This document shows positions 1 through 16,854 of a stretch of 64,000 bases of DNA, in pieces. The notes beneath the pieces were generated by a model. It was not told the origin of the DNA, made no database searches, and saw only the letters and a program-made list of their open reading frames with translations. The translations under genes were made by a program, and so were the position numbers. The stretch covers positions 4,712,001 through 4,776,000 of the forward strand of contig JANHCV010000001.1 of the NCBI GenBank assembly GCA_025594325.1, in the 5' to 3' direction. Source of the DNA: Blastocladiella emersonii ATCC 22665. Its lineage: Eukaryota > Fungi > Blastocladiomycota. Numbering within the stretch: position 1 is the first letter of the stretch; each line of letters begins with the position of its first letter.

Positions 1-4
1 TGCC

Positions 5-1899
5 ATGTCATCGACCAACGCCGTCCATCCCGCGGCATCGGCGGCGTCGCCCGGGACCGGCGGGCCCAAGGCAGCCATCGCCTCTCACGGCTCGGGCCAC
101 CACCATGCATCGAGTTCGTCATCCGCCAACCGGCCACACCATGACCCCGCACACACATCCTACGAGCCGACGCAGGAACCCGAGGGTCTCATGGCGTGGC
201 TCGCCGTGAACTGGCGGCTCGCGCGGTCGTTCCTGTGCACCCTGTACATTCTGACGGGCGCGGGCGTCATCTACCTGTTCTCGAGCTACGCGACGCAGCT
301 GCGCGACCGGCTCGGGTGCTCGCAGCTGCAGCTGTCGCAGCTCGCGAGCTCGGGGAACCTCGGGGTGCGCTCCATCCGCCCCGCGAATCGCTACTCCCAA
401 CGCTGACGCCCTGCCCCAACTCGGTAGCTCTACCTCGCCGGCCCGTTCATGGGCTTCTTCATCGACCGGTACGGCCCGCGGCCCATCGCCGTACTGAGCA
501 CGCTGCTCATGTTCGCGAGCTTCGCCGCGGTGCGGCACGCGTACGCGGCAGCGCCGGACACCATCTCGCCCGACTCGGCCCCCGCGACGCCGCCGGGCGT
601 GCTCGCCCTCTTCTACGTGTTCCTGGGCATCGGGTCGAGCGGCGTGACGCTGTCGTCGGTCGCGCTCAACGTGCGCTCGTTCCCGGCGGCGATCCGCGGG
701 TTCGCGGTCGGCGTGCCCGTCTCCTTCTACGGGCTCTCGGCGTTCGTGTTTGTCCAGATCAAGCGCAAGTGGTTCGAGAGCGCCGACGAGCCCGTCGTGG
801 GGATGCTCGGGTTCCTCACCGCGATCACGGCGTTTTTGGGGGTCGGGTTCGTCATTGCGGCGCTCGCTATGTGGGAGGTGCCCCGCACAGATGTCGAGGA
901 GGTGAGCGAGGCCGAGGCGGCGGTGCTCGTCGACGACGAGGAGACGGTCGTCGGCGGTACGGTGGCCGACGAGTCGACTGTGGTCCCGACCGCGCGCGGG
1001 CTCGGCGAGTACCTCCGCCAGATCCGCAGCTGGGTCCTGTTCGCCGTGTTCTTCCTGGCCGCCGGCACTGGGCTCATGTACGTCACATTCCCGCTTCTAC
1101 TAAACGAAACTGACCCCCGCCGCCTCGTAGGGTGATCGGCAACATCGGCGCTGTCGTCCTCGCGCTTTCTCCGCGCGGCGCGCGGTCCACGGACCCGCTG
1201 GTGCAGGCGCGGCAGGGCACGCAGGTCGCGGTGCTGTCGCTGTTCAACGCGGCGGGCCGCGTCGTTTCGGGCATGGGCAGCGACCGCACGGGTCCCGCGA
1301 CGCGCCCGTGGTGGCTACTCGGGTCGCTGTCCGTCATGACACTGGCCTCGCTCTTCATCACCAGCGGCGCGCTCCCATCCTCCGGCTCCGACGCGTCGTG
1401 GGAGCTTCCGCTCGCCGTGACGACCGCCGTGATCGGGTACGCGTACGGGACTCTGTGGAGCCTGTGCCCGGCGATCGTCGCCGAGTGGATCGCGCCGGCC
1501 AAGTTCGGGTCCGTTTGGGGGTTCATGACGTGCGTGCCGGCCCTGTCGCAGCAGGTCACGAACACGGTGTTCGGTGCGCTCTACGACAGCCACCGCGGGG
1601 CCGACGGCGGCGAGTGTCACGGCACCGAGTGCTTCCGCGCCGCGTACGTGGTCACGGCGGCCATGTGTGTCGTCGGTGCCGGGTGCGCGCTCGTGCTCGC
1701 GCTCGGGTGGGTGCCCGGGTCGCGGCTCGGCGGAACGACGCGGTACGTTCCCGTTGCGGACGAGGACGAGCTCAGCGCGGCGGCGAGCAGCGGTCGGAGC
1801 GCGGGAGCCACGGCAGCGACGCAACGCGTCCCCGCGCCGTTCGTTACCAGCGAAAACGGCGACCGGTCGCCGCTGCTCGAGCCGCCGCGGCCCGTGTAG
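5..1899 (+). CDS. MFS transporter, nodulin-like/MCH1-type (3 exons)
   Basis: ORFs 5..406, 449..1135 and 1132..1899 join through introns 365..427 (GTGCGC..TAG) and 1078..1130 (GTACGT..TAG). The product has multiple transmembrane helices and the MFS loop motif GFFIDRYGPR. Confidence 0.85.
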
Positions 1900-5936: not shown

Positions 5937-7539
5937 ATGCCCGTCCCGATGCAGCTGATCCGCCTGCGCGTCTGGTCGCCGCACGCCGCGTCCGACGGCA
6001 ACCCGGTCGTCGGCAACTTCCGCCCCTACCAGCGCCTTTCGGCCGTGTACCGCTGGCTGCAGAAGGAGCACGGGTTCCCCGCCGGCGAGCTCGTCTTGCA
6101 AGGGTTCCCGCCGCGCCGTATCTCGCTCCTTGAGGCCGACCCGGTCCTGGCTGCGTTCGACCTCGGATCGTCGGCCTCGCTCGTGTTTGAGCCGTACGCC
6201 GACATTGTTCCGCGAGGCCAGGTCGCTAAGCCCGACTGGGACGCATTTGACTACGCGGATCGCATCGGCGTGGTACGTTGTCGCCCGTTGCGACTCTGCC
6301 GGGTGAGCGCTGACGCGACCCGCCGCCCTAGCCGCCGCCCTCAAACCACTCCACCCTCGCGTTGACCGTGATCGTCGGCACCGCGCGGCCCGTCCTCGTC
6401 AAGCGCACTGTCCCGCTCGGCTTCTGCACCAGCGCGGTCCACCAGTGGCTGCGTGACCTCGGCCTGGGCACCGGCCTGCTCGCGCTCGGCAACGGCACCG
6501 CCATCAAGCCGAACCAGTCGCTCCTGTCGCTGCAAGCGCTCGGCGTGCGCGGTCCCGCCGCGGTCCTGCGCTGGTCGCCCGTCCTCTCGCTCGTCCCGCC
6601 GGGCGCCGTCGATCCGGACCCGAAACCGCGCAAACCGCGCGCCGCGACCAAGTGCTGCGTCAAGGTGCGCGGCGCGCTCCTCTGGATCGAGTTCATCGCG
6701 CGCGAGTTCCCGCTCTCGGCGCCGCTCGCGCACGTCTTCGAGTGGCTCGAGACCCTGGACGGCGTCGAGACCCTCGGGACCCTCGCCCAGACGGTGCCGC
6801 GCCGCCTGCTGACCAAGGATATGGCCGACACCACGCTCGCCGCGCTCGACTTCGGAAACTCCATGACCCTTAACTTCGAGAGCCTCGAGTCCATCGAGCG
6901 CCGCATGCGCCAGATCGCTATCGCCGCCGAGGACGAGCGCGTCGCCCGCGAGCTCGACCTGCGCGAGCGTGCCAAGGCCACGGCCGAGGCCGAGCGCAAG
7001 AAGGCCGAGGAGGCCGAGTACCTAGCGCGCATCCAGGACGAGATCGAGGAGGACCGGCAGCGTCGCGCGGCTCGGGTACGCTTTGTGGGCTCCGTGGTGT
7101 ACATGTCGCGGCTAACTCGGATGGCTACCACTTGTAGCGCAACCGCACCGCCGCCATCAACGCAACCCCGTCCCCCGCTCTGCCGCGCGCGCGGCCGAGC
7201 CACCGCATCGAGCCGACGCCGCCGCCGCCGCCTGTGCGCGTCGAGCTCCCGTCGCTCGCCACGGTGCGCGCGGTGCCGCGCTTCTCCAAGACCGAGATCT
7301 TCATCGGCAACCTGACCCACGTCAAGTCGCAGCGGCTCATGATGGCCGCCGACGCCACGTTCCGCGAGCTGTGCCTCGAGCTGCGCCAGAAGGGGTGGGC
7401 GCCCGACCCCAAGTTCAACCTCTACGCGGGACCCAGCGTCAAGTCGCAGCGGTTCTCGCTCGCCAAGCACGGGCAGCTCACGCTCGAGGATCTCGGGATG
7501 GTGCCGTCGGCGACGCTGTGGTATGAGCGGATTTTGTGA
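5937..7539 (+). CDS. Multi-UBX/ubiquitin-like domain protein with a UBXN1-like C-terminus (3 exons)
   Basis: Introns 6273..6331 and 7076..7137 join the ORFs in frame. UBX-type motifs LQGFPPRRI, QTVPRRLL and TLEDLGMVPSATL, plus a charged coiled coil (ARIQDEIEEDRQRR). Confidence 0.7.
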
Positions 7540-7843
7540 ATCTTGGAAAGGGAGAGGTAGACTGGGAAAGGTAAAGGAAGTGTCACGATTTTGTCTCGCC
7601 CCGTGTCTCGCACCCGCCACGTGATGAGCGCCGATCCTCATTTCGCGTCGAATGAATCGAGTCCGTCAGCAGGCTCGCGCCCCAAGACCGCTGCGCTTGC
7701 CCCACCCCCGCTCTCGCTCCCGTAAGCGCTCGACTACTAAAGACATCTCATTCAGGGCAAGTGCGTCGTGCAAACCGCGGCTCGCCATCACCGCAACCAT
7801 CACCACCAAAGCGAACCGGTTTCGCGACCTCTGCCCATCAACC

Positions 7844-9007
7844 ATGTCGAGCCACTACACCTCCCTCACGTACACGGCCGCACAGTCGAGTGCACTGCGC
7901 CACGAGCGCTCGCGGACGCTCAACTGGGTCCGCGCCGGGTCTGGGTACTGGACGCGCCGCGTGTCGCCGCAGCCAAGCAACACCGACCTGTTCTCGACTA
8001 GCGACCTACTCGACAGCCTGCCCACGGTCGAGGTCATCAAGTGCCTCCCGCCATCGGCGCCCGTTGTGCACGAGGACGGGCTTCCCGAGCTCGTGTCCTC
8101 ACCGCCGGCCGTCGAGCCGGAGGTCGAGCCCGTCGTGGAGCACCGTAGCACCCAGTCGGCGCCGCTGCTCACGCTCCCGATGGAGCTGCACATCCACATC
8201 CTGTCGTTTATCGCGCCCGAGTCGGTCGTCGGCAAGGCGACGTGGAACGCCGACTCCCCAAAATCGCCGCCCGCGACCACGGACCTCCTGGTCGCGCGCC
8301 TGACGTGCCGCGCGCTCGCCGCGGCCGCCAACGCCGTCCTTCGCCCCATCCTCGACCGCGACCTGCCCGTCATCACGCTCGCCGAGGAACGCGCGCTCGT
8401 ATACCGCGAGGGCGTCGAAGCGGACGCGCGGGAACCGCTCGCGCACAACCGCCGGTTCCTACGCACGCTGTCGACGGCGCACCTGTCGGAGCTCGCGTCG
8501 ATGAAGCGCCCGCCGCGTGAGGTCGTCCAGGTCGCCGCGTGTCTCGCGGCGCTCATGGGGACCGGCAAGTCGAGCAGCGGCAGCGTGGCGCGGCTCCGCC
8601 ACGACGCGTCGTCGGTCAGCTACGACGGCACCTCGTGGACCGCGACGCGGCGCGCGCTCGCGCGGCCCGAGGCCCGGGCGTGGCTCGCGGCCCTGCACAC
8701 GCGGCTCCCGCCCGCGGTCGTGAACCCGGTGGGCGTCGAGGCGGCGCGCGCGGCGCTCGTGGCCATGGGGATCTCGTACGAGCGGATGCAGGAGGTGTCG
8801 ATGGCCGGGTACCGCGCGCTCATTGTGGTCGCGGCGTGTATCCAGTACTGCGAGCACGCGGGCCGCGTCGAGGCGGCCAAGAAGGCGCACGGCATGCTCG
8901 AGCGCCGCGTGGGGCAGGTGCGAAAGCTCGCGGAGGCGCTCGGGTGCCGCGCGGCGGTTGAAGCGGTCGAGGTGGAGGGCGATGAGCTGGCTCACGCTGC
9001 CGAGTAG
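7844..9007 (+). CDS. F-box protein with a C-terminal dynein stalk/microtubule-binding-domain-like region
   Basis: F-box LLTLPMELHIHILSFI..DLLVARLTCRAL. The later LRTLSTAHLSELASMKRPPREVVQV..SWTATRRAL..YERMQEVSMAG..IQY resembles the dynein heavy chain MT-binding stalk. Start taken at ATG 7844. Confidence 0.7.
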   Translation: MSSHYTSLTYTAAQSSALRHERSRTLNWVRAGSGYWTRRVSPQPSNTDLFSTSDLLDSLPTVEVIKCLPPSAPVVHEDGLPELVSSPPAVEPEVEPVVEHRSTQSAPLLTLPMELHIHILSFIAPESVVGKATWNADSPKSPPATTDLLVARLTCRALAAAANAVLRPILDRDLPVITLAEERALVYREGVEADAREPLAHNRRFLRTLSTAHLSELASMKRPPREVVQVAACLAALMGTGKSSSGSVARLRHDASSVSYDGTSWTATRRALARPEARAWLAALHTRLPPAVVNPVGVEAARAALVAMGISYERMQEVSMAGYRALIVVAACIQYCEHAGRVEAAKKAHGMLERRVGQVRKLAEALGCRAAVEAVEVEGDELAHAAE

Positions 9008-9515: not shown

Positions 9516-11809
9516 ATGGCCTCGAACGCCCGTTCTTCGCCGCGCCGCCGCACCATCGCCGGCGCCCCGGCCAAGGTGCTGGCCATGGCCCTCGTCCTCG
9601 TCGTCGCCGCCATGTCGGCCTCGTCCATGGTGGCGCTGGCCGCTCCCGTGGACTCGTCGTCGTCCTCTGCAACCGGTACGTTCCCTCCTGCTTCTCCCTT
9701 GCAGCTGCTGTGCCGCAGCGAACGGCGACGCCGCCAGACGTGTGTGGGCTCCGCCACTCGACATGTGGCGTGCGTTCGCGGGGCCACACCGCCGCGCGAA
9801 TATCGGGTCACTCACCCTTGCATGAATATCTGCTAGGATCGGCCATCGCCGCCCCCTCCGCCACCGCGACCGCGAGCGTGAGCGCGCCCGCCGCCTCGGC
9901 CACGGCGCTTCCGCCGCCCGTCGGCTCTGCGAGCCCTCCCCCCGTCGCGACGACCGCGCCGCCCGGGAACCGTAACCGTCCCACGCCGTCGCCCACGGGC
10001 ATCGTGTCGGCCATCGGCACACCGTCGCCGGCGCCCGTCGTGCCGCGTCCGCCGCCCGCTGCGAGCCTGATCGTGCCGGTGCCGCGTCGCACCTCGGTGT
10101 CTGCTGCGCCACCCGTGGCCTCAGCTAGCCCGGTGCCCCTGCAGCCGCCCGCGGAGAACAACACGGAGCGCGAGTCGACGGCGCCCATCGCCAACCTGCG
10201 CTCGGGCGGCGCGCTCGACGAGCAGTCGCAGTCTCCGCCGCCCGTTGCCGACACGGCCGATCCTGTCGCCCCCATCGCCGACGCCGCGCCCGTCCCTGCC
10301 CCTGCCCCCGCGCCGCCATCGGGTGATATCACCGCTGCGACCGGCGCGCCCGATGCCGCGAACAGCAGCCCCGTGGCGCCGTCCGCGGACGCGGGTACGC
10401 CGCGCAACACGGGCGCCGTGGGCGCAGAGGGATCGACGTCCACGGCGTCCACGGCCTCGTCGTCGTCGCCGCTCGTCGCCATCTTCTCGACGCTCGGCGT
10501 CGTCGGCCTCGTTGCCGGCGTCGCGGGGGTCTCGTACATGCGCACGCGCGCGCGCCGCGACGGCGGGGCCGCGCTGCCGTGGGGGCTCACCAAGAACCAC
10601 CACCGCGGGAGCGCTGACAGCGGCAACGCCGCTGCGGCTCCCGCGACGGCGGCGGCGACGGCGCCGTCGCCCGCGCAGAACTCGATGCGGTCGATCGGCC
10701 CCGCGGCCGTCGCGCCCACGGCCGGCGGCGACTCGGGCAGCCTGCGCCGCCAGCACAAGTTGGCGCTGTTCCCGACGACGCAGGCGGTGCGGTCTGCGCC
10801 GACGTCGCCCACGACGCTCGCGCGCGGCCGGCTCAACGACGACGAGGACGAGGACGCCGAGTCCACCAAGGCCGTGCCCTACACCAAGCCGCCGTCGCTC
10901 CCGCGCCTCGCGCGCACCGCGTCCATGAACTACCGCCAGTCGCACCCGTCGTCGTCGGGTTCCGGTTCGGCGCTGCCGTCCGCGCTCATGTCGCTCGCCA
11001 TGGTCCCCGAGGAGGGTGCCACCTCGCCCACGACAGCTGCCGCCGTCGCGAGCCTGTCGCCGACGCCGTCTGAGGTCAAGACCCTCGCGCGGACCTCGTT
11101 CGCGTCACTCGAGTCGCACGCGGCGCCGCGCCTCGTGCACATCGACCCGGACCGCGACCGCCGCTTCGTCACGTCCGTGTACACGCTCGCCACTTCGCTC
11201 TCGTACCGCGACTCGCGGCGGTACTCGGCCACCGACTCGGAGATTGCCGCCGACGAGCTCGCCGCCAACACGGCCGCGAACGCCGGCGACGTCGACGAGG
11301 ACGCGGCTGTCTCCCTCGCCGCGGCGCTCGCCGAGCTCGAGTCCCCGCCCGCCTCGCCCGTGCTCTCGGACGTCTCGGGCACGCTGATCGGCGGGTCGCG
11401 CAACCCGGCTGTTGCGCCTGCGTCGCCCATCGTCACGTCGCCGAGCGCGAGCACGGACCTCGCCGCGTTCCTTGCCGCAACGCAGCACCGTCTCGCGCTG
11501 ACGGCCCCCGGCGCCGCGTACGCGCGCGAGTCGCTGGGCGCGGCCAGCGACACGCCGTCGAGCACCTTCTCGTTCCACGCGCCGTCGTCGCTTTCGCGGT
11601 CGACCCCCTCGCCGACCCCGGTCGCGGCGGCAGCCCGGCCGCGCGCGCGCCGCGTCGCGATCCCGTATGTCCCTGAGCTCGAGGACGAGCTGGCGCTCAA
11701 GCGCGGCGACCTGGTCGCTGTGCAGCAGCTGTTCCACGATAACTGGGCGGTCGGCGAGAACCTCACGACGGGCGAGTCGGGCGCGTTCCCGATCGTTTGT
11801 CTCGAGTAG
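9516..11809 (+). CDS. Type I membrane protein: signal peptide, Ser/Thr/Pro-rich ectodomain, one TM helix, C-terminal SH3 (2 exons)
   Basis: Intron 9676..9836. TM helix VAIFSTLGVVGLVAGVAGVSYM. SH3 YVPELEDELALKRGDLV..DNWAVGEN..GAFPIVCL. Confidence 0.8.
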
Positions 11810-14343: not shown

Positions 14344-16854
14344 ATGGTACCGCAGGACACTACATGCAATGCAGCAATGAACCAACCTCATGCAACCGTC
14401 TAGGCAGAAGCGGTCAAGGTCGTGCTGCGGTGCCGGCCGTTCAGCGAAAAGGAAAAGGCGGCGGGCCACGCCAACATCGTCAAGATCGACGAGACCGATG
14501 CGCGCGTGTGCATCACGGACCCGAACGCGGGCACGGGCGACGCACCCAAGTGCTTCACCTTCGACTCGGCGTTTGACTGGAACTGCAAGCAGCTCGACGT
14601 GTACAACAAGACGGCGCTGCCGATCGTCGAGTCGGTGCTCAACGGGTACAACGGGACCATCTTCGCGTACGGGCAGACGGGCACGGGCAAGAGTTTCAGC
14701 ATGGAGGGCGTGCGCGACGTGCCCGAGCTGCGCGGCATCATCCCCAACTCGTTCGAGCACATCTTCTCGCACATCCGGTCGGCCGGCGGCGGCGTCAAGT
14801 TCCTGGTGCGCGCCAGCTACCTCGAGATCTACAACGAGGAGATCCGCGACCTGCTCGCGTCGGGCGCCACGCGCCTCGAGCTCAAGGAGCACCCGGACAC
14901 GGGCGTCTACGTCAAGGACCTGTCGTCGTTTGTCGTCAAGGACGTGACCGAGATGGACAAGCTCATGAACCAGGGCAACAAGAACCGGTCCGTCGGCTTC
15001 ACCGAGATGAACGCGCGGTCCTCGCGCTCGCACTCCATCTTCACCATCACCATCGAGATGAGCGAGGAGCGCGACGGGAAAGAGTGCATCCGCATGGGCA
15101 AGCTGCACCTCGTCGACCTCGCCGGGTCCGAGCGCCAGTCCAAGACGGGCGCCACGGGCGACCGCCTCAAGGAGGCCACCAAGATCAACCTCAGCCTGTC
15201 GTGCCTCGGCAACGTCATCAAGGCCCTCGTCGACGGCAAGTCGAGCCACGTCCCCTACCGCGACTCCAAGCTCACCCGCCTGCTCCAGGACTCGCTCGGC
15301 GGCAACGCACGCACCATGATGATCGCCACCATGTCGCCCGCCTCCTACAACTACGACGAGACCATCAGCACCCTGCGGTACGCCGCCCGCGCCAAGTCCA
15401 TCAAGAACAAGCCCAAGATCAACGAGGACCCCAAGGACGCCATGCTGCGCATGTTCCAGGAGGAGATTGCCCGGCTCCGCGCCCAGCTCGAGATGGAGGG
15501 CGGCGCCGGCGGGGAAGGCGGCGACGTTGCGCCTGGGACCGAGGCCGCTACTGGCGGCGACGACGCGGGCGCCGTCGACTCGGGGACCGAGGAACCCGAT
15601 CCCGACGAGGGTGCCGATAGCGGCGGCGGCGGCGCACCACCAACCGCGGGCGACGCTGGTCCGGCCTCGCCAACAACGACGACGACAACGGGCGGCGCGC
15701 CGCCGGGCCGCAAGAACGCGGGGCTCACGCTCGAGGAGATGCGGCTCATGGAGCAGCGGATCGAGGAGGAGAAGCGCAGCATTCTCGAGAGCAAGGACAT
15801 GATCGAGTCGGAGAAGCAGGCGCTGCTGGGCGAGCTGGCGGCGCGGCAGGCCGAGATCGACGGCGAGCGCAAGCAGCGCGAGGAGCTGCTGGCCAAGCTC
15901 GAGCAGATGGAGAGCAAGCTGCTGGTCGGCGGCGTCAACCTGCTCGACAAGGAGGTGCAGCAGCGCGAGGAGCTGGCGCGGCAGGCGGCCGAGCTTGAGG
16001 CGCGCAAGCAGCAGCAGCTCCTGATCCAGCACCAGATGCAGCAGGAGGAGGAGGCCGCGCTGCAGATGGAGGAAGAGTACAACTCTCTGCAGGACGAGGC
16101 CGCGGCCAAGACCCAGAAGATCAAGAAGCTGTGGTCGCTCCTCATGAACCACAAGGCCGAGCTCAAGGACCTGACCGAGGAGTACCAGCGCGAGCGCGAG
16201 GACCTGCTCGACACGATCCGCGACCTGTCGCGCGAGCTCAAGTTCAAGATGAAGCTCGTCGAGCGCTTCATCCCGGACCGCGAGCTGCACTGGATCGAGT
16301 CCAACGCCGAGTGGGACGAGGTCAACGAGCAGTGGCACGTCCGCTTCGCCGCACACGCTGGAAACAACGTCCGCGGCCAGCGCCTCCCCTCGCACTCGCA
16401 CGTCCGCCACCAGCAGCTTCTCCACTCGGCAAATGGCGGCGGCGGGTCCGGCGTCGCGCGACGCACCGGCGGCGCGAGCGTCAAGGCCGGCACCGCGTCG
16501 AGCGCCATGGGCCCCGAACCGCCGAGCTGCTGGCCGCTCGTGTACCCGACGCCCGAGGTGTACCTCTCGTACGAGCGCGGCGGCGGCGGCAGCGCCGGCG
16601 GCATGGTGGGCGCGGGTGGGCCGCGCATCGCTGGCTTGGCGCACGGCGGACCCTCCGCAGCTCGGATGCGCACCTCGGCCGCGCCGTCGTCGGGCGGGAC
16701 GCAGGCGCGGCCGCAGGCGGCGCGGACCAAGAGTGGAACGCGGTCGAGCCGGCCAGCGGGCGCGGGAACGGCGGCCTCGCCAACGCCGTCGTCGCCGCCC
16801 AAGGAGACGCCCGTGGCGCGCGGGCTGGTTGCGAGGCCAAAGCACTACGCGTGA
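14344..16854 (+). CDS. KIF3A: Kinesin-2 motor subunit, KIF3A/FLA10-like (intraflagellar transport)
   Basis: ATG, then intron 14347..14403, then AEAVKVVLRCRP. P-loop GQTGTGKS, NARSSRSH and DLAGSERQ. Coiled coil LQDEAAAKTQKIKKLWSLLM and tail GNNVR resemble KIF3A. Confidence 0.9.

Follow-up and report, generated by a model that had tools for sequence, protein, structure and literature searches.

Our analysis indicates that Blastocladiella emersonii encodes an F-box protein whose C-terminal segment is the distal part of a dynein stalk, carried without a motor. We regard both this architecture and the dynein origin of the C-terminal module as close to certain. The stalk copy comprises about 45 to 50 residues of CC1, a six-helix microtubule-binding domain (MTBD), and about 45 residues of CC2 that fold back on CC1. 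To our knowledge, the dynein MTBD has so far been treated as a part that exists only on dynein motors. A preliminary description of the locus took such a protein to be undescribed, and literature searches for a combination of an F-box with a dynein stalk or MTBD likewise returned no relevant paper.

A single intronless gene encodes both domains

The gene lies on the + strand of the window, that is, the whole stretch of 64,000 nucleotides that was analyzed, and consists of one complete intronless coding sequence of 387 codons plus stop (Table 1). Residue for residue, the product agrees with the gene model of public assembly GCA_025594325.1. The proposal of a single gene at positions 7844 to 9007 was thus borne out, as the reading frame is uninterrupted and matches the public 387-residue model; the open reading frame (ORF) list also contains a longer version of this frame, beginning at 7652. 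All peptide strings that had been quoted for the domain assignments were recovered in the translation of 7844-9004 (+), at the residues given in Table 1. Over the first 106 residues, the family alignment shows no conserved consensus.

A Pfam scan of the 387-residue protein gave no match to AAA, DHC_N, or Dynein_heavy, and the neighboring genes, up to about 6 kb to the left and right, likewise carry no recorded AAA domain, in keeping with the earlier statement that the protein has none. A protein of this size without the AAA+ ring (AAA1 to AAA6), the linker, and the tail is not a dynein heavy chain motor. No paralogs were found when the protein was compared with the 64-kb window by tblastn. The flanking genes encode a UBX-domain protein (upstream) and an SH3 protein. 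We considered a functional tie to the UBX-domain gene, a p97 cofactor type, and rejected it, as the two genes are not evidently neighbors in B. britannica or Allomyces, judged from recorded Pfam labels.

Table 1. Features of the F-box/stalk gene and its predicted product (nucleotide positions refer to the window)
Feature	Nucleotides	Residues	Strand	Basis
F-box + dynein-stalk/MTBD protein, CDS	7844..9007		+	ORF list, translation, public gene model
N-terminal region, poorly conserved, predicted disordered	7844..8161	1-106	+	pLDDT mostly <50
F-box	8162..8338	107-165	+	Pfam, family profile, model
LPMELHIHILSFI helix of F-box		111-123	+	LPxE(L/I) start
Lineage-specific 23-residue insert in F-box	8216-8284	125-147	+	after LPMELHIHILSFI helix
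Stalk CC1	8339..8458	166-205 (modeled helix 156-205)	+	pLDDT >90; DNAH10 alignment
EADAREPLAHNRRFLRTL		192-209	+	quoted string in translation
Globular MTBD homolog	8459..8800	206-319	+	structure and DNAH10 alignments
H1 with PP turn	8474-8515	211-224	+	MTBD
HLSELASMKRPPREVVQV		213-230	+	quoted string in translation
H2		225-238	+	MTBD
Variable linker at "flap" position	8558-8629	239-262	+	MTBD
H3 (SWTATRRALAR)	8630-8662	263-273	+	MTBD
SWTATRRAL		264-272	+	quoted string in translation
H4, H5, start of H6 (ISYERMQEVS)		within 206-319	+	MTBD
YERMQEVSMAG		312-322	+	quoted string in translation
Stalk CC2	8801..8938	320-365	+	modeled helix, continuous with H6; DNAH10 CC2 alignment
IQYCEHAGRVEAAKK		333-347	+	quoted string in translation
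LERRVGQVRKL		352-362	+	quoted string in translation
C-terminal helix	8948..9001	369-386	+	modeled pLDDT 60-78; column conservation low in family

The N-terminal domain is an F-box with a lineage-specific insert

An F-box had been placed at about 8160 to 8340, and the Pfam F-box-like match agrees closely with this placement, spanning residues 109 to 163 (nucleotides 8168 to 8332). Taken alone, the protein reaches an E value of 0.0059 and 16.8 bits against F-box-like, for which the curated cutoff is 24.3. When the window protein and 70 relatives were scanned, F-box-like was matched at an E value of ≤0.01 in 44 of the 71 sequences and F-box in 42 of the 71, with a best E value of 2e-9, and several relatives score above the curated F-box cutoff, such as P0020 (37 bits) and P0010 (32.6 bits). 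Compared with the PDB, the family profile matches the F-boxes of Skp2, Fbw7, cyclin F, and Dia2 at E values of about 2e-3.

The LPxE(L/I) start and the three-helix core are both present; in the alignment of 58 members, R152 never varies, and P112 and E114 are each kept in at least 90% of the sequences. The F-box helices are modeled at pLDDT values of 80 to 97. Helices 2 and 3 follow the 23-residue insert, and modeled helix 3, which begins at residue 156, extends into CC1. An insert of more than 4 residues at this site is found in only 3 of the 58 members.

The C-terminal domain matches dynein stalks in profile and structure

The 387-residue protein alone gives no significant match to dynein: its E value is 0.19 against Pfam MT and 1.9 against DNAH10 in a phmmer search of the PDB, the latter match consisting of two colinear stretches. 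A profile built from 58 full-length members, with fragments and fused models excluded, and compared with the PDB matched the stalk/MTBD of DNAH10 at an E value of 8e-18 (profile positions 77 to 282 aligned to residues 3214 to 3403), the Chlamydomonas chain 8glv_Cn at 1.4e-16, and about 35 other dynein heavy chain sequences, all of them at the stalk. A profile of six sequences from the window protein's own subclade, covering four named genera of Blastocladiomycota, matched the DNAH10 stalk at 5.5e-12. Contamination of the profile by true dynein fragments was suspected and then discarded as an explanation: one relative with a strong MT match (P0066; E value, 1.3e-21) was removed and is absent from the 58-member profile, and the DNAH10 match persisted. 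The best match is to DNAH10/I1-alpha of mammals and Chlamydomonas, with a margin of at least about 19 bits over other dynein classes in the same structures. By these best-hit margins, which are what the class assignment amounts to, the stalk domain is most similar in sequence to that of axonemal inner-arm dynein f/I1 alpha (DNAH10).

The AlphaFold2 model has an overall pLDDT of 76.5 and exceeds 90 over most of both domains; AlphaFold run with the single sequence reached only 38.8 and was uninformative. In the model, the fold is that of the dynein stalk tip, an antiparallel coiled-coil hairpin capped by a six-helix bundle. Structure comparison with VIA-align gave a Z score of 12.7 and an rmsd of 2.4 Å over 148 of 149 residues for the mouse dynein-1 MTBD on microtubules (6rzb_C) and the same Z score for the DNAH7 MTBD (6rza_X), and whole-stalk structures (5ayh, 3wuq, and 8i3j) aligned to residues 153 to 369 of the model with Z scores of 10.9 to 11.7. 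The first non-dynein, non-axonemal entries have Z scores of ≤7.4, and the best 50 Foldseek matches of the model are dyneins in 50 of 50 cases. Profile and structure comparisons therefore agree with the earlier identification of CC1, a six-helix MTBD, and CC2; a lack of any stalk profile or structure match had been named as grounds for abandoning it, and strong matches of both kinds were obtained instead.

Prolines at the junction of stalk and MTBD, in both CC1 and CC2, are conserved in dyneins. The CC1 of our protein aligns to the DNAH10 CC1 segment ending in EVMPILEAAKLEL, and its proline is P198, within REPLAHNRRFL; 83% of family members carry the CC1 proline in one column and 5% in the adjacent column, where P198 of the window protein falls. 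The CC2 proline, which DNAH10 has within IKPKR, is missing, with proline occupying 0 to 2% per column across query positions 333 to 351 in the 58 members. In H1, E216 and the PP turn are conserved, and the lysine before the PP turn is replaced by S, T, or A in most members; the window protein retains a basic residue there (KRPP, opposite AKPP in DNAH10). Helices H1, H3, and H6 are those that contact the microtubule in dynein (bioRxiv 10.1101/590786). The basic residues of H3 (positions 269, 270, and 278) are K or R in 93% of cases, and R314 of H6 is conserved at 91%. The family also has motifs of its own that are not in dyneins (WY..PP, TVCECLCIL, and ITYERLREVS..GY), and the insert between H2 and H3 varies from 5 to 98 residues.

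Overall, the family shares with the dynein stalk/MTBD (PF12777 MT; DNAH10, 8glv_Cn) the antiparallel CC1/CC2 hairpin with its six-helix cap, the CC1 proline, an H1 that ends in a PP turn, an H3 tryptophan followed by basic residues, and the H6 pattern S..G/A...L..V.A...Y. Unlike dynein, it lacks the AAA+ ring, the linker, the tail, and the buttress, its stalk is only about half as long, the CC2 proline and mostly also the H1 lysine are lost, the H2-H3 insert is variable, and an F-box is attached to CC1 at its base.

The family is found in zoosporic fungi

A phmmer search with residues 183 to 387 against 1.84 billion representative sequences retrieved 70 relatives at an E value of ≤0.001, 26 of them at ≤1e-10, and phmmer links the window protein to the family at 1e-22. 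In word-indexed searches, the full-length query found itself only and the 58-member alignment found two proteins only, whereas a search restricted to a region of a typical relative, P0011, was productive; language-model lookups of the protein returned nothing beyond vague F-box or unnamed clusters. The usual layout among the 70 relatives is a variable N terminus, an F-box, and the C-terminal helical domain, and the order of F-box and stalk recurs in most of them, across three fungal phyla. In one metagenomic relative (P0085), F-box and MT appear together in the precomputed Pfam list. Some relatives are model fusions or fragments, such as P0054, in which an MFS transporter is joined to the domain, and several short pieces.

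All 30 relatives with a named organism come from zoosporic fungi, representing 22 genera of Blastocladiomycota, Monoblepharidomycota, and Chytridiomycota; another 21 members that were looked up are metagenome or SRA sequences, and this source lookup covered all but about 30 members. The chytrid members include an ortholog in Spizellomyces; S. punctatus is a transformable species. No member from a nonflagellated fungus was present among the matches of the one single-sequence search (phmmer, residues 183 to 387), and the family thus appears, from these sequences, to be restricted to zoosporic fungi. The family tree roughly follows the species tree, with the window protein grouping with B. britannica and then with Allomyces.

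Discussion

The combination of an F-box with a dynein stalk tip suggests a mechanism. In this scenario, the F-box would bind Skp1, making the protein a substrate receptor of an SCF ubiquitin ligase, and the stalk-MTBD, situated where F-box proteins bear their substrate-binding domain, would dock the ligase onto the tubulin lattice at the dynein footprint. Since the AAA ring needed to shift the coiled-coil registry is lacking, the affinity state of the MTBD would be fixed. The SCF complex would then ubiquitinate tubulin or lattice-bound (axonemal) proteins, leading to their proteasomal removal, and the most plausible setting for this would be the retraction and dismantling of the zoospore flagellum at encystment or germination.

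As a whole, the mechanism of an SCF receptor docked on (axonemal) microtubules and marking them for removal is, in our judgment, evenly poised between right and wrong, and its parts differ in strength. Retention of microtubule binding by the predicted MTBD is the somewhat favored reading, given the conserved basic residues of H3 and H6; a role specifically in the disassembly of the axoneme is tentative, and we would place it slightly below an even chance. The SCF/axoneme idea gains indirect support since the named members all belong to zoosporic fungi, since the closest dynein is the axonemal DNAH10, and since the retracted, internalized flagellum of chytrids is degraded partly via the proteasome according to passages of PMC8887899 that cite Venard et al. 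2020. Proteasome genes are upregulated in germlings (PMC8887899). Once the flagellum is internalized, its axonemal tubulin reportedly decays over hours. Features that count against the mechanism include the subthreshold F-box of the window protein with its 23-residue insert and the loss of the CC2 proline throughout the family.

The H1 lysine has been replaced in most members and family-specific motifs have arisen, and therefore the binding partner could have changed. This leads to an alternative that we consider unlikely but worth weighing, in which the protein is an SCF receptor whose dynein-derived hairpin lost tubulin binding and was retooled to recognize a different substrate, such as a protein of the flagellum or basal body. 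The near-invariant motifs unlike those of dynein (WY before the PP turn, the C-E-C-L-C helix, and GY.LLIVVAACLQY) would fit such a change, as would the loss of the H1 lysine, the absence of the CC2 proline in 58 of 58 members, and the variable insert of 5 to 98 residues between H2 and H3. However, charge conservation is strongest on H3 and H6, two of the helices through which dynein contacts the microtubule, the backbone fits that of the microtubule-bound state at 2.4 Å, and there is no hint of a different ligand.

F-box proteins that function independently of SCF are known, such as Rcy1 and Ctf13 in yeast. By analogy, the protein may have a nondegradative role in motility regulation, either competing with or gating the inner-arm f/I1 alpha site on the B-tubule or tethering Skp1 to microtubules or the basal body. 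Such a role would be in line with the domain being closest specifically to DNAH10/I1-alpha, by a margin of about 19 bits or more, but the conserved LPxE core of the F-box is what would be expected if assembly with Skp1 into SCF were under selection, and we hold this alternative to be rather improbable. We consider a chance resemblance of a generic helical hairpin or coiled coil to dynein refuted, because the weak single-sequence scores (E values of 0.19 for Pfam MT and 1.9 for the PDB) and the middling structural Z scores that long helices yield with many folds are outweighed by profile E values of 8e-18 and 5.5e-12 with motif-level identity across the globular MTBD, by a Z score of 12.7 with near-complete MTBD coverage against ≤7.4 for non-dynein, non-axonemal structures, and by the joint F-box and MT entries of P0085. 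Equally refuted is an annotation or assembly artifact that joined a dynein fragment or pseudogene to an F-box gene: while some relatives are clear model fusions or fragments, such an origin is very unlikely here because the ORF is uninterrupted and the two-domain order recurs in dozens of genomes of three phyla, both domains having invariant residues and the tree roughly matching that of the species.

Returning to the SCF receptor docked on microtubules, its design can be set beside several known systems. As in the FBXO-type proteins Skp2, Fbw7, and cyclin F, the protein has an N-terminal F-box with an LPxE(L/I)...I core and, behind it in the substrate-binding position, a C-terminal domain; in contrast to them, this domain is not a WD40, LRR, or listed FBXO domain but the track-binding element of a motor, and the F-box of the window protein, with its 23-residue insert, lies below the Pfam cutoff, its Skp1 binding being a prediction. 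Further counterparts are the seryl-tRNA synthetase fusions used in structural work (SRS-MTBD; 3err and 6rzb), with which our model aligns at Z scores of 12.5 to 12.7. There, too, the MTBD is detached from its motor and mounted on a shortened coiled coil, with the registry set by the fusion partner, not by an ATPase, but whereas those are laboratory constructs on a tRNA synthetase hairpin, the present family is natural and conserved and has an F-box at its base.

Ubiquitin ligases that associate with microtubules exist, for example, MID1/TRIM18 with its COS box, and axonemal tubulin is ubiquitinated during flagellar resorption in Chlamydomonas. The proposed logic, an E3 located at the microtubule or axoneme that marks components for removal, would be the same, although the ligase classes and the microtubule-binding elements are unrelated. 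We know of no microtubule- or cilium-associated E3 that uses a dynein MTBD.

A broader scenario can be proposed, which we offer as possible and on balance doubtful. Zoosporic fungi may possess a dedicated SCF receptor in which a domesticated f/I1-alpha MTBD recognizes the microtubule or axonemal lattice and which marks the retracted axoneme for the proteasome at the zoospore-to-germling transition. Its MTBD would be the first of dynein origin to stand alone in nature. The dynein stalk would have been captured in an early flagellated fungus, and the gene would have been lost together with the flagellum.

If the SCF reading holds, the dynein MTBD would be a portable module that evolution has reused to target a candidate ubiquitin-ligase adaptor or to bind its substrate, and the family would provide a naturally occurring equivalent of the fixed-registry MTBD constructs made in the laboratory. 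It would also supply a molecular candidate for a question of chytrid and blastoclad cell biology, how the internalized axoneme is recognized for proteasome-dependent degradation (Venard et al. 2020, cited in PMC8887899). The protein is small, which makes in vitro tests possible. Since its members appear to be confined to flagellated fungi, the family extends the fungal flagellar gene set by a lineage-specific entry.

Finally, several GenBank records name members of this family "Dynein heavy chain 10, axonemal." This name is a misnomer, since the AAA+ ring, linker, and tail are lacking, and our comparison exposes it as a recurring misannotation in public chytrid genomes.

Identification of the stalk domain

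Taken alone, the 387-residue F-box/stalk protein gives an F-box-like match in Pfam under the curated cut-off (E 0.0059, residues 109 to 163) and a match at E 0.19 (residues 194 to 240) to MT (PF12777), the family for dynein stalks, and a phmmer search of the PDB with its C-terminal 205 residues returned human DNAH10, an axonemal inner-arm dynein heavy chain, at E 1.9 only. The two DNAH10 stretches matched are colinear and both lie in the microtubule-binding domain (MTBD), one at helix H1 and the PP turn, the other across H5, H6 and the coiled-coil arm CC2. An exhaustive phmmer search of 1.84 billion cluster representatives, with residues 183 to 387 as query, yielded 70 relatives at E ≤ 0.001, of which 26 reach ≤ 1e-10; the majority of the 70 have 220 to 380 residues and carry the matched domain at the C terminus.

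A first profile of all 71 sequences gave E 1.8e-19 for the DNAH10 stalk. The profile was suspected of containing pieces of true dyneins, and one relative (P0066) is a dynein-like fragment (MT, E 1.3e-21); a cleaned 58-member profile, from which P0066, short fragments and two over-long models had been removed, still matches. Its PDB matches include DNAH10 from both cattle and human, with E values between 8e-18 and 1.3e-17 (profile positions 77 to 282 to residues 3214 to 3403), Chlamydomonas chain 8glv_Cn at E 1.4e-16, and about 35 further dynein heavy-chain sequences, invariably at the stalk, while its matches outside dynein stalks are F-boxes (Dia2, Fbw7, Skp2 and cyclin F, E about 2e-3). A subclade profile of six sequences (our protein, those of Blastocladiella britannica, Paraphysoderma, Allomyces and Sorochytrium, and one without organism name) matches DNAH10 at E 5.5e-12. 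The identity between profile and DNAH10 extends through the globular domain, beyond heptad similarity, with the common motifs tE..s+a.PP..+qtVceC+.i+kG, l.W.t.k and e.M..VS.aG..mL..V.Av+.Yc.

The predicted structure points the same way. A single-sequence AlphaFold model was uninformative (pLDDT 38.8); AlphaFold2 with the 58-member alignment reached a mean pLDDT of 76.5, with values above 90 over most F-box helices and the entire C-terminal domain. All of the best 50 Foldseek matches in the PDB are dynein. VIA-align superposed model residues 182 to 353 onto residues 3270 to 3418 of the mouse dynein-1 MTBD on microtubules (6rzb_C; Z 12.7, rmsd 2.4 Å, 148 of 149 residues), and gave Z 12.7 for the DNAH7 MTBD on microtubules (6rza_X) and Z 10.9 to 11.7 for the whole-stalk crystal structures 5ayh, 3wuq and 8i3j (model residues 153 to 369). 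Unrelated helical proteins score about 7 or below, with the exception of one radial-spoke chain: residues 434 to 610 of PDB 7jtk chain C (Chlamydomonas radial spoke 1; Z 9.6, 170 aligned residues), the sole non-dynein structure above 8. This chain gave no match in the PDB search with the 58-member sequence profile, and the resemblance may merely reflect a similar helical hairpin.

Sequence profiles and predicted structure together identify the C-terminal domain as the stalk/MTBD of a dynein. This bears out the preliminary description, which had placed a dynein stalk segment after the F-box; the peptide strings that it quoted are all found in the translation where it located them. In the model, the protein retains about the distal half of the stalk, some 45 to 50 residues per arm. 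Chance resemblance to dynein is excluded by the family profile, the subclade profile and the structure comparison, and a gene-model artefact by the architecture shared family-wide.

Features of the F-box/stalk protein, its gene and neighboring genes (nt, position in the window; aa, residue)
Feature	Position	Strand	Description
Upstream gene	nt 5937-7539	+	493-aa protein; faint Pfam signal for UBX (p97/Cdc48 cofactor)
F-box/stalk gene	nt 7844-9007	+	Single unbroken ORF, 387 codons
Long helix	aa 156-205		F-box end continuing into CC1; AlphaFold2 model
H1	aa 211-219		Short helix, AlphaFold2 model
H2	aa 225-238		Short helix, AlphaFold2 model
H2-H3 linker	nt 8558-8629 (aa 239-262)		Serine-rich; at "flap" position
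H3	aa 263-273		Short helix, AlphaFold2 model
H4	aa 275-286		Short helix, AlphaFold2 model
H5	aa 295-308		Short helix, AlphaFold2 model
H6	aa 312-318		Short helix, AlphaFold2 model
CC2	aa 320-365		Long return helix, AlphaFold2 model
SH3_9-domain gene	nt 9516-11809	+	710 aa
Kinesin motor gene	from about nt 14344 (L004:12501-13164)	+	Pfam Kinesin, Microtub_bd

Family architecture and conservation

Among the 71 sequences, Pfam finds F-box-like in 44 and F-box in 42 (best E about 2e-9), several members exceeding the curated F-box cut-offs. The family consensus opens with the F-box (LPNEL.L.I...L....LL..R..S) and a helical stretch, continues with RP.L.HYR.FL....(I/V)tE..WY..PP.EL.TVCECLCIL.G and a variable linker, and closes with W..IKK.M.RY.FK.W..NL, ITYERLREVS..GY.LLIVVAACLQY and one more helix. 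The F-box of our protein has an unusual 23-residue insert between helices 1 and 2; inserts of more than 4 residues at that site occur in only 3 of the 58 members. Two relatives are exceptionally long: P0013 (Gonapodya sp., 1462 aa) has an extension of about 1150 residues ahead of its F-box, and in P0054 (Nowakowskiella sp. JEL0078, 708 aa) the stalk domain is attached to an entire sugar/MFS transporter, probably through the merging of two gene models.

In dynein, microtubule contacts are made by helices H1, H3 and H6 (bioRxiv 10.1101/590786). The family keeps E216 (97% acidic) and the PP turn, an invariant H3 tryptophan followed by basic residues at 269 and 270 (93% K/R each) and 278 (93%), R314 of H6 (91%) and S319, together with the CC1 proline (P198 here), which is present in 83% of members in one column and in 5% in the adjacent one. 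Where DNAH10 has AKPP, the basic or dynein-like residue before PP is mostly kept in our protein and its Blastocladiomycota kin (KRPP, LKNPP), whereas most chytrid members have S, T or A. The CC2 proline (IKPKR in DNAH10), on the other hand, is missing in all 58 members, and the H2-H3 linker is anywhere between 5 and 98 residues long (25 here); at this site some axonemal dyneins carry a flap that touches the neighboring protofilament (10.1101/590786). Absent, too, is the dynein AAA ring, which changes coiled-coil registry. A rival to tubulin binding is that the stalk domain has been re-tooled for a non-tubulin ligand.

Origin and distribution

For each organism with a solved axoneme, the 58-member profile matches best, among PDB chains, the f/I1 alpha heavy chain of the inner arm or a chain that is likely its orthologue. 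In mammals, DNAH10 scores 67 to 68 bits, DNAH1 25 to 28, and DNAH7, DNAH2, DNAH9 and DNAH6 18 to 20; in Chlamydomonas, 8glv_Cn (I1-alpha, as we infer from chain length and the neighboring chain label) scores 63.6, DHC2 44.7 and I1-beta 23.6; in Trypanosoma brucei, "IDAf-alpha" scores 35.5 and the next chain 33.6. The subclade profile leaves the ranking unchanged. Several chytrid members of 317 to 333 residues (KAJ3159885.1, KAJ3044000.1 and others; P0004, P0010, P0075, P0081) bear the automatically assigned GenBank name "Dynein heavy chain 10, axonemal"; homology to the stalk led to this misannotation. On the best-hit margins, taken here in place of a tree with labeled dyneins, we think that the f/I1-alpha lineage was the source from which the stalk domain was captured.

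A source look-up covered 51 relatives, about 30 further matches lying outside it; 30 of the 51 carry an organism name, in every case that of a zoosporic fungus, and 21 are proteins from metagenomes or SRA assemblies with no such name. The 30 represent Blastocladiomycota (B. britannica, Allomyces javanicus, Paraphysoderma sedebokerense, Sorochytrium milnesiophthora), Monoblepharidomycota (Gonapodya) and Chytridiomycota (Irineochytrium, Nowakowskiella, Rhizophlyctis, Phlyctochytrium, Blyttiomyces, Synchytrium, Caulochytrium, Quaeritorhiza, Borealophlyctis, Cladochytrium, Chytriomyces, Physocladia, Entophlyctis, Siphonaria, Spizellomyces, Homolaphlyctis). The dynein-like fragment served as the root of a quick maximum-likelihood tree, for which P0013 and P0054 were trimmed to the domain and 11 rows omitted (the seven short fragments P0009, P0018, P0033, P0050, P0062, P0067 and P0069 and four more cluster members, P0072, P0073, P0086 and P0087). 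Blastocladiomycota are basal, followed by Gonapodya and then the chytrids; our protein groups with its closest relative, that of B. britannica (SH-aLRT 95), and next with Allomyces. The branching order agrees with vertical inheritance since an early flagellated fungus. Dikarya, Mucoromycota and Zoopagomycota, all heavily represented in databases, gave zero named matches in one single-sequence search, which is consistent with loss alongside the flagellum. Several unnamed long-branch sequences could originate outside zoosporic fungi.

An ESM Atlas model search also returned clusters with PF12777. A weak structural neighbor (TM 0.29) is an oomycete cluster (58 members, about 398 aa) with Impact_N in 33% and dynein MT in 14%; it may be a second, independent dynein stalk outside the motor, in another zoosporic lineage.

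Proposed function

As known for F-box proteins, the F-box would bring in Skp1-Cul1-Rbx1. The stalk-MTBD, occupying the position of the substrate-binding domain, would, by analogy with dynein MTBDs, attach the ligase to the tubulin lattice with its affinity state fixed, where tubulin or lattice-bound proteins may be ubiquitinated. The setting would most likely be clearance of the retracted axoneme: a passage of PMC8887899, citing Venard et al. 2020, has chytrids reeling in the axoneme, with degradation following partly by the proteasome, and proteasome genes are described there as up in germlings. Alternatively, the role could be non-degradative, for example if the protein competes with I1 dynein or tethers Skp1.

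Our full-text literature search turned up no account of a protein that combines an F-box with a dynein stalk, nor of any dynein MTBD occurring in nature on its own, in agreement with the earlier impression that the architecture was undescribed. F-box proteins go unmentioned in a 2026 survey of fungal flagellar proteins (PMC13358043), and public records otherwise name members "F-box domain-containing protein" or hypothetical. The novelty lies in a new and unexpected targeting domain on a receptor of the already known FBXO type.

Gene and genomic context

The 387-residue product is identical to the gene model of the public assembly (GCA_025594325.1, contig JANHCV010000001.1); a longer in-frame reading starts at 7652. 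Because G+C in the region is 62 to 76%, we regard the numerous overlapping ORFs on both strands as compositional noise. Genes recorded up to about 6 kb away in both directions carry no dynein motor domain.

The UBX-domain gene upstream makes two adjoining ubiquitin-system genes, an adjacency that the recorded Pfam labels do not show for B. britannica or for Allomyces. An SH3_9 gene (776 aa) also adjoins the B. britannica orthologue, on the opposite side and strand (L002:3312-5710, minus), which constitutes local synteny with rearrangement. The kinesin gene, starting about 5 kb downstream, probably has no relation to the F-box/stalk gene.
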